Origin: Octopus bimaculoides
Lineage: Eukaryota
DNA: 48,355 nt
Direction of reading: 5' to 3'
Assembly (NCBI RefSeq): GCF_001194135.2
Contig: NC_068984.1
Location: forward strand, 74,807,229 to 74,855,583
Part shown: positions 20,394 to 45,931 of the stretch, piece after piece
Layout: every line of letters starts with the position of its first letter
Position numbering within the stretch: the first letter of the stretch is position 1
Translations under genes and position numbers: made by a program
The notes under the pieces: generated by a model
The model's input: the letters and a program-made list of their open reading frames with translations, nothing else
Told to the model about the DNA's origin: nothing
Database searches by the model: none

Positions 20394-20429
20394 AGCGTGG
20401 TCATGATGGTTATGGTAGTTCATCTGAAG
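20394..20429 (+). CDS. Repeat micro-exon 1 (36 nt, phase 1-1): (E)RGHDGYGSSSE
   Basis: Acceptor tccttttttgcag, donor GAAG|gtaatg. Open frame; paralogous flanks shared with the other exons. Confidence 0.8.
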
Positions 20430-20884
20430 GTAATGGTTCTTAAATCCCCACTTTTTCCCTGCTCTACTGGCATCTAATAAGCCTTTGAATTTGACTGGGT
20501 AACTTATTTTCAAAATATAAACGTTCATGCACCATAGACACGTCATTGAATTTTTCAACCTAGGAACTGCTTCAAACCATAGATTTTAAAATAATAAAAA
20601 CAGCCTTACGCCTCTATAAATATTTAATTGTTAATTAACCTCTTTTGGACATACATCACCCACTTTTCACGCAAGTTTTTTTCGATATTATATAATATAT
20701 ATTTATATTTTACTGTTGAATTTATACACATCCAAACTGCCCAACCGTTAACAAATACAATACCATTTATGTTTTTAACATGAGTTACCCAGTGAAATTC
20801 AAATGCTTATGCGTGAAACTAGATTATATCAAATGATATCTTACATGTCCCATCTCAATTTTATTCTAGTCGTGATCACAACAA

Positions 20885-21220
20885 CACAAATGTCTCACAT
20901 TACATCGTTTGCTCATTGTCGCAGGTCTCTAGGAAAATCTCTAACTATTACTCATCCTTTAGGGATAGGAATACAAATAATAGTACCAGTCTTTGTACGT
21001 TAATCTGGAAACTTAAGGACTACAATAAACAATTCTCTTTGGAATGGTCAATACTGGCTACCTCAATACCCTACGACAAGGGTAAAGATTTTTGTCCTCT
21101 CTGTAACTTGGAGCTATTTCACATTCTGTTCTCCAAGAATAATTTAGTGAACCAGATAACACAGAGTGCATACAGATGCCAGCATTGGAGGAAACACACT
21201 TTCAGCTCATTTCATTAATT
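20885..21220 (+). mobile_element. Penelope-like element, GIY-YIG C-terminal fragment
   Basis: SSFRDRNTNNSTSLCTLIWKLKD...WSILA...PYDKGKDFCPLCNLE...RCQH, typical of the PLE endonuclease C-terminus; followed by AT-rich UTR and (TAA)n. Confidence 0.8.
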
Positions 21221-22284
21221 TCATAGTTTTTACTAATTTTAGTTATTATTTTTTTCACCTACCAACATACTCACTAGTTGATAGCCACTTTACATGCGGT
21301 ATGAACTATCACCCCACTTTGTATTTATTTTTATTTAACTTTAGACAATAACAATAATAGTAATAATAATAAATTTATTTTTACGTTTATAATAATAATA
21401 ATAATAATAATAATAATAATAATAATAATAATAATAATAATAATAATAATAATAATAACAACAACAACAATAATGAGAATAATAACATCATAATATTATC
21501 TTAAATAACACTTATATCTAGCTCCAACGCCAGTTGTTTACACTCTCTCTCTTCCTCTAGTTTAGTACAGCAGGTTTAACCCCCGAAAAGTTATATTCGT
21601 AGAATTTTTAAGTATATTTATATATATATTTACGTATTTACTATCGATTTTGTTATAGTAAGCATGTTTATTCTTATTATTTCAACACTTTATAGTTTTG
21701 TACCTTGTATTGCTATTTATTTGGGTTAATTACCGTAACTAAATATGATACAGCATTAACGGTTAATTATATTTACAATCCATCGTTAATTATCCTTCCT
21801 TATAAACGTTTTATTTACATTAATCGTATATTAAGAATTCGATGGATTCTCTCCCTTCTCCTTCCAATTACAATGAATTTTTATTACCATTTTTATTAAC
21901 TTTAAGATTTTTCTGCGGTTCATTATGTCTTCCTTTAATTTAAACTCTTAGTATAGCGTTCATAACCTCTCTCCATAAACAGTTCCCTGTAAACTAGCGT
22001 TCTTGTTACTAGCGTTCTTGTCAACTAAGCTATATAGTGGTAGTCCTCGTACGTAACCTTAGCATTCAGCGCAAGTCTTGCGTTTGTAATATGGTTCCCT
22101 GATGATGGAATTATATGTATACCAGCATCTCTTACTTCTTTGGAGTAGAGTGCATATAATTTTTGAAACATATGTAGGAATTAAAGGAACTTATTGATTA
22201 TATGCGTTTTGCTCCATTTATTATTATTCTCTAATGAGTCTACAGTCATGATATAGATATATATATTTTTCATTTTTTTTCCAG

Positions 22285-22341
22285 AGCGTAGTCATGAAAA
22301 TGGGCGCTCTCCTCATAATGATTTTGGTAGTTCATCTGAAG
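22285..22341 (+). CDS. Repeat micro-exon 2 (57 nt, phase 1-1): (E)RSHENGRSPHNDFGSSSE
   Basis: Acceptor catttttttttccag, donor GAAG|gtaagg; open frame. Confidence 0.85.
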
Positions 22342-44337: not shown

Positions 44338-44384
44338 TTATTATTATTATTATTATTATTATTATTATTATTATTATTATTATT

Positions 44385-44760
44385 GAGGTCACTACCTGGA
44401 AGCCAACTCGGAATCTTGGGGTTAATAGCCTGCGCTCTTAACCACTACGCTATATGCACCTGGGCAATTATGGAGTGAATTCTAGGGCTTAGGAGGTTGT
44501 TGTGTCCTAGCATATGTGCTGCTTCTTATAATTTTCGCATTTTCCAGTGGTCTTCTCTGTCTATTATTTTAACTTTATCCCACAGGGGGATCAGCTATAC
44601 CCGATTTATCAATATCTCCTCGTGTCACATCTTTGCGATTTTCCTCTACCCTTATTTTGAGGAGGCGACATGCTTCGCCTTTGTATAACCTACCACAGCT
44701 GCATGGGATGGAGTATACGTAGTTTTTGGTCATATTCTCTTCTATTGGTGGCTTTACTCG
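44385..44760 (-). mobile_element. Penelope-like element, inverted arm (GIY-YIG fragment, 3' UTR, tRNA-like segment)
   Basis: RVKPPIEENMTKNYVYSIPCSCGRLYKGEACRLLKIRVEENRK; reverse-complement homolog of ~45130-45597. Confidence 0.88.
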
Positions 44761-45770
44761 AAGGAGATTCAGGATATCCGTATACCGCAAGCCGACCTTC
44801 ACTGGACGATACCTCAACTACAATTCCCACCATCCATACAGTGTAAGGAGAGGGATTGCTCAGTGCCTAAAACATCAAGCAAAGAATATTAGTAGCGTTC
44901 GTGATACCCACAAAGAAGAAATGATGAAGCTCAGTAACAATCTATTAAGCAACAATTACCCCAAAAACATACTATCCACTCTAATTATGAAGAAAAGAGG
45001 GGATGAAACCAATAAACTATCCACAGTCAGTCTACCCTATGTGAAAGGCCTCTTCAAAAAGATACAAAATATATGCGACCCATATGACATCAGGACAGTA
45101 TTCAAGAGTAATACTTCGCAAATATGTCCGAGTAAAACCACCAGTAGAAGAGAATGTGACCAAAGACTGCGTGTAGACCATCCCATGCAGCTGTGGTAGG
45201 TTATACAAAGGCGAAACATGTCGCCCTCTCAAAATAAGGGTAGAGGAATATCGCAAAGCAGTGACACGAAGAGATACTGATAAATCGGGTTTAGCTGATC
45301 ATGTACGGAAAAATGGAGACCACCTTCCTCTGTGGGATGAAGTTAAATAGACAGAAAACACCAGTGGAAAATACGAAAACTAAAAGAAGTAGCACATATG
45401 CTAGGACACAACAACCTCCTAAGCAGACCGAGTGCAGATACGAATAGCATACGGGAACCGGTATTAAGGAAGGATAGGAAAATATTAGATTTATATGCCC
45501 TAAAATTCCATAATTGCCCACGGGCATATGGCGTATTGGTTGAGAGCCCGGGCTACTAACCCCAAGATTCCGAGTTCGATACCAAGCAGTGACCTGAATG
45601 ATAATAATGATAATAATAATAACAACAAACAACAACAACATCGAAAAATACCTTAGGAATGAAATTTCCCGAAGACACCTGATGAAGGCTGAAGGGTATA
45701 TCAGCCGAAACGTTGTGTTAACAACAAACGAGATGAGGACAAATATCCGTCAAATGTAAATAATGTGTGT
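44761..45770 (+). mobile_element. Penelope-like element, 5'-truncated (RT thumb, linker, GIY-YIG, tRNA-like segment, (TAA/CAA)n, hammerhead tail)
   Basis: ISVYRKPTFTGRYLNYNSHHP...LPYVKGL..KI, then IPCSCGRLYKGETCRPLKIRVEEYRK...SGLADHV; frameshifts present. Confidence 0.9.
45674..45719 (+). ncRNA. Minimal type-I hammerhead ribozyme
   Basis: gacac-CTGATGA-a-GGCTGA(agggtata)TCAGCC-GAAA-CGTT-gtgtt: intact core, 6-bp helix II, palindromic ACGT helix III, helix I gacac/gtgtt. Confidence 0.7.
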
Positions 45771-45880
45771 GTGTATATATATATACACGCGCGCGCGCAC
45801 GCACACACACACACATATATCTGATAAAGAACGGAGTTTTGTTCAACATACAGCTAAATATGTTTTTAAATTTTTCTCAG

Positions 45881-45931
45881 AATCCTCTGAAAATCCTCAT
45901 CAGAATATGCACGAATATAGATTATCTGAAG
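45881..45931 (+). CDS. Repeat micro-exon 8 (51 nt, phase 1-1): (E)SSENPHQNMHEYRLSE
   Basis: Acceptor tttttctcag, donor GAAG|gtaatc. Flanks (gttcaacatacagc upstream, gttaaatctcgatatatt downstream) are shared with exon 7. Confidence 0.85.

Follow-up and report, generated by a model that had tools for sequence, protein, structure and literature searches.

A tandem array of short symmetric exons with a predicted acidic, S-x-E-rich product in Octopus bimaculoides

Exon family and duplication history of the locus

The analysed stretch of Octopus bimaculoides DNA (assembly GCF_001194135.2, contig NC_068984.1, positions 74,807,229 to 74,855,583 of the forward strand), referred to below as the window, comprises 48,355 nucleotides (nt) with a G+C content of 35.5%, sixteen gaps of N and very many microsatellites. 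Its transposable elements include copies of a short interspersed nuclear element (SINE), fragments of long interspersed nuclear elements and of other transposons, and one intact Tc1/mariner element. On the plus strand, at 20394-45931 (~25 kb), an array of seven intact mini-exons and one decayed copy was found by six-frame translation followed by reading of the DNA. When the exons are joined in phase 1, splicing builds S-x-E and SSSEE motifs in an acidic frame, as had been stated in an earlier interpretation of the same DNA (the sequence-only reading), which proposed a secreted phosphoprotein of the casein type.

The first exon, e1 (20394-20429, 36 nt, phase 1-1), reads (E)RGHDGYGSSSE, i.e. ERGHDGYGSSSE, and lies between the acceptor ttttttgcag and the donor GTAATG. 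Exon e2 (22285-22341, 57 nt) reads (E)RSHENGRSPHNDFGSSSE, with the exon peptide ERSHENGRSPHNDFGSSSE, and e3 (26877-26933, 57 nt) has the same sequence, ERSHENGRSPHNDFGSSSE. The decayed copy e4p (27827-27883, 57 nt; EHSQENGHNA*NDYDKSAG) contains an in-frame TAA and a GC donor and has lost its terminal Glu. Two exons of 45 nt follow, e5 (35532-35576; (E)SHETGYNNHDDSSD, exon peptide ESHETGYNNHDDSSD) and e6 (37045-37089; (E)SHETGYNSYDDLSD, exon peptide ESHETGYNSYDDLSD). The array is completed by e7 (39159-39218, 60 nt; (E)SSENIYKDMHDYGDDDSAE, exon peptide ESSENIYKDMHDYGDDDSAE) and e8 (45881-45931, 51 nt; (E)SSENPHQNMHEYRLSE, exon peptide ESSENPHQNMHEYRLSE). All eight lengths are multiples of three. 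A pyrimidine-rich tract with CAG precedes every exon, and GTAAT or GTAAG follows all of them except e4p.

Each exon starts with AG or AA and ends with G, so that the phase-1 junction codon is GAG or GAA, that is Glu; this part of the sequence-only reading held for all eight exons. The junction motifs that it listed, SSSE|E three times, SSD|E, LSD|E and SAE|E, were all present and LSE|E was additional. The exon-start motifs S-H-E, S-S-E and S-Q-E were also seen, but the exon with S-Q-E is the decayed one (27827-27883), with its TAA and GC donor. The terminal G of the exons is at the same time the plain splice-donor consensus, and the features common to the exons are inherited among paralogues and not independent.

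Both strands of the whole window were scanned for intervals that follow a pyrimidine tract with CAG, end in G before a GTAA or GTGA donor, have a length divisible by three and are open in phase 1. Twelve such intervals were obtained, eight of which belong to the mini-exon family. A looser scan that required acidic composition returned the family only, plus one marginal interval of 24 nt (41984-42007), and a still more relaxed scan of the window added nothing convincing. Further family exons were sought in the window with nhmmer --max and the relaxed scans, and none was detected except a distant copy on the minus strand at 11684-11755 (72 nt, phase 1), which reads (D)PSGNPFDKDYDGNDDKVYFNVLE, encodes DPSGNPFDKDYDGNDDKVYFNVLE and has a CAG acceptor and a GTAATT donor. 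Its splice layout is the same as that of the array exons and its downstream intron motif, CTGCTATACTG, is related to theirs. The contig that carries it (10717-14019) has an N gap at each end, and the exon is either an inverted paralogue or part of a contig misoriented in scaffolding.

None of the N gaps falls inside an exon; each exon together with both of its splice sites lies in unbroken sequence. The pairs e1 and e2 (20319-22562), e3 and e4p (26771-33645) and e6 and e7 (36978-40347) are each on one contig. The number and order of the exons are a lower bound, because the four junctions e2 to e3, e4p to e5, e5 to e6 and e7 to e8 cross gaps. Because every family exon is symmetric and begins with A[AG], the frame and the junction Glu are independent of which family exon follows.

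By self-comparison, each exon was found to sit in a duplicated unit with 150-750 nt of collinear intron sequence, which bears out the duplication of short phase-1 exons implied by the sequence-only reading; the exons are also symmetric and in tandem. The lowest divergence, ~8%, was determined for the e2 and e3 units, the flanks of which are 90-93% identical. It was ~16% for e5 and e6 (unit 35473-36228 is 83.5% identical to 36986-37730), ~20-23% for e3 and e4p, and 25-37% for e7 and e8 and between subfamilies, the e8 unit being 75% identical to the e7 unit. Birth-and-death turnover of the array is evident from the identical pair e2 and e3, the decay of e4p and the deletion of a further exon. 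The broken donor, the stop codon and the lost terminal Glu of e4p occur together in one copy, which fits decay after release from selection.

Two further segments of the array contain unit sequence. At 30912-31613 (plus strand) a copy of the e5/e6 repeat unit lies without its exon, and a segment of ~620 nt that bears the exon in the e6 unit is missing at 31084|31085. At 23170-23907, part of the sequence that follows e1 and e3 is repeated, with no recognisable exon upstream (23315-23722 is 91% identical to 20476-20883). This copy adjoins an inverted segment and a gap of 808 N; either an exon was lost there or the gaps may conceal it.

Splicing of the Dscam type with docking and selector sequences was also considered and was rejected, as no reverse-complement copy of the conserved intron flanks was found in the window. 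The flanks next to the exons are conserved no better than the rest of each duplicated unit. In the lack of both special conservation and reverse-complement partners, the intron flanks are therefore regarded as duplication remnants.

The apparently intact Tc1/mariner element lies on the minus strand at 29346-30905, within one intron of the array. Its open reading frame (ORF; 29605-30648, 347 residues) contains the HTH_Tnp_Tc3_2 and DDE_3 domains, and its nearest database relatives in a homology search were only ~60% identical; an exact-protein look-up with the ORF gave no record. The element is flanked by inverted repeats of ~200 nt, and its insertion interrupts sequence that runs unbroken in the paralogous units. 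Directly upstream of the unit with the decayed exon e4p, a tRNA-like sequence (27631-27704, plus strand) was detected with Rfam RF00005 at 33.7 bits and was not called by ARAGORN; it probably represents the head of a SINE derived from a tRNA.

Other repeats are scattered over the window. A SINE-like element of ~450 nt is present in four copies in both orientations (4639-5136, 9047-9478 on the minus strand, 38729-39000 and 43124-43555), and presumably resembles the abundant Octopus SINE. Metagenome scans with the SINE and with the exon-flank motif of the array gave no match, nor did a literature search for the SINE sequence. The segment 44353-45628 consists of inverted duplicated fragments (e.g. 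44487-44760 versus 45424-45129), whose ORFs we take to resemble Penelope-type reverse transcriptase and GIY-YIG motifs; the Pfam search of 44726-45199 gave no match. Several decayed retrotransposon ORF fragments were located at 14646-17000 and, on the minus strand, at 117-467, with duplicated segments among them (14954-15168 and 16559-16772; 15564-15797 and 16765-16999). No Pfam match was obtained with those of the fragments that were searched.

Predicted peptide and choice of reading frame

The joined phase-1 peptide has 117 residues, of which 21% are Ser, 28% Asp and Glu, 9% His and a single one Lys, with an isoelectric point (pI) of 4.4 and a grand average of hydropathy (GRAVY) of -2.0. It contains 15 S-x-E motifs, or 12.8 per 100 residues, compared with 4.0 expected from composition-preserving shuffles. 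This is a ~3.7-fold enrichment with P<5e-5, and such P values overstate the significance because the exon copies are paralogues and not independent. When the duplicate exon was counted once, 12 motifs were found with 3.2 expected. SSSEE occurs three times, the expectation from the shuffles being 0.025. In contrast, the CK2 pattern S-x-x-[DE] was not enriched (9 versus 6.9 expected, P=0.21). The retention of S-x-E, at the exon start in five of six lineages and at the exon end in all intact exons, is a more meaningful statement than the P values.

No stop codon interrupts phase 0 in any of the eight exons, and for e4p it is the only open frame. Its peptide (SVVMKMGALLIMILVVHLK...) consists of 16% Met and of 60% Met, Leu, Val and Ile together, with a pI of 10.4 and a GRAVY of +1.28. 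If the exons were real and read in this frame, the product would be a very hydrophobic, basic polypeptide and the S-x-E motifs would have no counterpart in it; a few substitutions between close exon pairs are indeed conservative or silent in phase 0. The openness of phase 0 is partly automatic, because the acidic frame has almost no T at second positions and thus produces no stops in the next frame, and it is most likely a by-product of this composition. The ratio of the proportions of nonsynonymous and synonymous differences (pN/pS) was about 1 in both frames and is uninformative for the choice.

The remaining evidence favours phase 1. The G+C content of third codon positions was 0.15 in phase 1 and 0.45 in phase 0, the latter value exceeding the genomic 35.5%, and the first codon position of phase 1 is G-rich. 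The exon-start S-x-E motifs are encoded by AGT CAT GAA, TCA CAC GAA, TCT TCC GAA, TCC TCT GAA and AGT CAG GAG, so that Ser is kept across both classes of Ser codons, whereas the residues that phase 0 yields at this position bear no relation to one another. In the distant family exon (11684-11755), phase 1 is the sole open frame, and phase 0 is interrupted by TAG. The composition of the phase-0 product is bizarre; no conserved residue motif was seen in it, and neither a homologue nor a Pfam match was obtained in searches with it. Provided that the exons are real and coding, phase 1 is very likely the true frame, and translation in phase 0 is considered highly improbable.

Proposed product and alternative readings

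With phase 1 as the frame, the region would belong to the interior of a protein-coding gene restricted to one lineage, in which the array of short symmetric phase 1-1 exons grew by tandem duplication of exon-plus-intron units. Each exon would encode a module of 12-20 residues rich in Ser, Glu, Asp, His, Gly, Asn and Tyr, which opens with E-(x)-S-x-E and closes with S-x-[ED]. As the split junction codon is always Glu, any combination of exons would be in frame and each junction would remake S-x-E; after an exon ending in SSSE, the junction would remake SSSEE. An intrinsically disordered polyanion is predicted as the product, which would enter the secretory pathway and be phosphorylated at many sites by a Golgi kinase of the Fam20C type. 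Its clusters of phosphoserine, carboxylate and His could then bind divalent cations. Fam20C is the Golgi casein kinase, targets S-x-E/pS (pS, phosphoserine) and can proceed along a run of Ser before EE (PMC6829671). It is conserved in invertebrates, molluscs included, and about one third of shell-matrix phosphosites fit its motif (PMC5824888, PMC4094399).

Several results weigh against this proposal, besides the second open frame and the inflated P values described above, and they bear on the coding status of the array as well as on secretion. Over six exon pairs pN/pS was ~1.3 (Nei-Gojobori), indicating no purifying selection at the residue level, and the older exon pairs diverge at the intron rate or faster. 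The sequence-only reading had missed this absence of amino-acid constraint, as it had the phase-0 frame and the disabled exon. No homologue of the joined phase-1 peptide was found either by a word-indexed search or by an exhaustive HMMER search of 1.84 billion representatives, no Pfam family matched it at E<=10, and no known cephalopod protein of this kind was found in literature searches. These results, together with the decayed and the deleted exon and the absence of a matching annotated protein in the searches, would suit a dying or never-functional array, i.e. a pseudogene segment, a non-coding transcript or an unexpressed region, in which the open frame results from youth and skewed composition; the scarcity of second-position T leaves the neighbouring frame open automatically. 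Against this, seven of the eight copies keep both splice sites, a length divisible by three and an open frame despite divergence of up to about 35%, and S-x-E survives codon changes. Exons e2 and e3 are identical at 57 of 57 positions while 250 nt of flank differ by ~9% (P ~0.004). The exon length differences, which require at least four independent changes, are all multiples of three, and those of intron indels are not. In addition, the only copy with a broken donor, e4p, is the only copy with a stop codon. Conservation thus covers the reading frame and splice sites as well as composition and end motifs, but not the residues. Such conservation is usual for low-complexity disordered proteins, yet it fits a weakly constrained array too. 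The mini-exons are likely to be real coding exons, and a dying or functionless array is judged unlikely. That the exons are mimicked by a dispersed transposable-element fragment or an assembly artefact is extremely improbable. Gaps are numerous in the region, as are SINEs and further transposable elements, and the flanking intron was duplicated along with the exon; the copies within the array, however, have a single orientation and are confined to it, the units are collinear over 300-750 nt, the length changes by multiples of three are restricted to the exons, and differences of 7% to about 35% are too large for collapsed or expanded alleles.

Even with genuine exons and an acidic frame, the protein could be intracellular, as a nuclear or cytosolic acidic disordered region with sites of the CK2 type, if phosphorylated at all. 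Nopp140 and treacle provide the precedent, as both carry acidic Ser clusters and treacle repeats are encoded one per exon. The SSSEE motif is compatible with S-x-x-E as well. No convincing first exon with a signal peptide (ATG and a hydrophobic core, ending in phase 1) was detected on either strand of the window and no convincing terminal exon was found in it; the gene probably starts beyond the window or within one of the gaps. The enrichment of S-x-E and the absence of enrichment of S-x-x-[DE] beyond composition argue against an intracellular product. With one Lys in 117 residues, the visible part of the protein is without the alternating basic blocks of Nopp140 and treacle, and extracellular proteins of structures or matrices more typically show such a content of His, Gly, Tyr and Asn. 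A proteome-wide search for SSSEE in C. elegans yielded 85 proteins, of which just 43 are secreted or anchored in membranes, so about half are non-secretory (PMC6829671), and SSSEE alone is weak evidence, not diagnostic of secretion. An intracellular acidic protein is rated as an improbable alternative.

If the exons are coding and phase 1 is their frame, a secreted substrate of a Fam20C-type kinase is somewhat more probable than not. The complete proposal, in which the exons belong to a lineage-restricted gene whose secreted polyanionic product is phosphorylated by a Fam20C-type kinase, is plausible but falls short of being probable. A specific role in biomineral formation or calcium binding is speculation and at best unlikely; most S-x-E phosphoproteins play no role in mineral formation (PMC6829671). 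It is likewise doubtful whether a cephalopod has independently evolved a casein- or SCPP-like gene for a secreted phosphoprotein, whose phospho-clusters would be completed only by splicing. Jointly with that idea, and with no higher expectation, each exon could be viewed as a plug-in phospho-module, so that the number of cation-binding clusters would be adjusted through exon duplication and loss, and perhaps through alternative splicing.

Comparison with known systems

The array resembles the vertebrate SCPP genes, which encode caseins, SIBLINGs and the enamel and saliva proteins such as statherin and histatin, in its acidic and disordered product, which is predicted here, and in the S-x-E motifs at the exon ends. 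Histatin 1 starts with an S-H-E site and is rich in His, like the modules of the array. Clusters of the SSSEE type are shared with the caseins and are the sole feature of casein membership that is shared; no Pfam casein match was obtained even at E<=10, and the source is not a vertebrate. As in the SCPP genes, growth proceeded by tandem duplication of short symmetric exons (PMC3632108, PMC9122587). In contrast, the introns are in phase 0 there (PMC9122587, PMC3632108) and in phase 1 with a split Glu here, in eight of eight exons. The S-x-E density of the array, 12.8 per 100 residues, is several times higher than that of Scpp and Sparc-L proteins, for which 1.7-1.9 and a maximum of 5.1 were reported (PMC9122587). 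Furthermore, no sequence similarity to SCPPs was found, no SPARC-like signal-peptide exon, which descent from SPARC-L1 would entail, was seen in the window, and the source is a mollusc. The array is thus independent of the phase-0 SCPP exons, as had been suggested, being in phase 1 and similar to no protein or Pfam family, and therefore any likeness would be convergent. Of the casein/SCPP-type interpretation in the sequence-only reading, the exon duplication and the motif density stood; support from a signal-peptide exon was not found in the window and SSSEE turned out to be a weak argument.

The sea-urchin tooth protein phosphodontin is a lineage-specific protein without homologues, with short acidic repeats (EISSGEGEQPK) and a pI of ~3.9 (PMC2830187). 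The array is like it in having many short acidic repeats, each with Ser in an S-x-E context, and no homologues. In phosphodontin, however, the signal peptide and the phosphorylation are proven and the tissue is known, and the phosphodontin repeats are rich in Glu, Gly and Pro and contain neither His nor Tyr. The shell-matrix phosphoproteins of molluscs belong to the same phylum and are likewise acidic with S-x-E motifs; they are secreted, and Fam20C is present in the tissue (PMC4094399, PMC5824888). They have no sequence relation to the array, and octopods are without a mineralised shell.

Elastin and titin PEVK are examples of genes for disordered proteins with symmetric tandem exons. As in such genes, the exons of the array encode short low-complexity modules. 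The composition and the presumed function differ from those of elastin and titin PEVK, and no docking or selector complementarity was found here. Genes for disordered proteins typically consist of symmetric exons that were duplicated in tandem (PMC3632108), and a uniform phase lets any subset of exons splice in frame, as it would in the array. The successive exons are homologous and of one phase class, as is characteristic of symmetric exons that arose by local duplication and encode disordered modules.

At present the locus is best described as an orphan exon array with a hypothetical function. If the array is expressed and the product secreted, it would represent a clean convergence at the level of protein chemistry, in the dense S-x-E and SSSEE clusters, and also in the way of gene building, from short symmetric exons with the kinase motif at their ends. 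Such convergence would lie outside the vertebrates and would use a different intron phase. Under the same condition the product would be a candidate Fam20C substrate in cephalopods, in which the proteins of statolith, stylet, egg-case and adhesive matrices and secretions are poorly known. The kind is already known from the lineage-specific acidic repeat phosphoproteins of invertebrates, e.g. phosphodontin; particular to the array are the phase-1 layout and the junction codon, which itself supplies the acidic residue of the motif.

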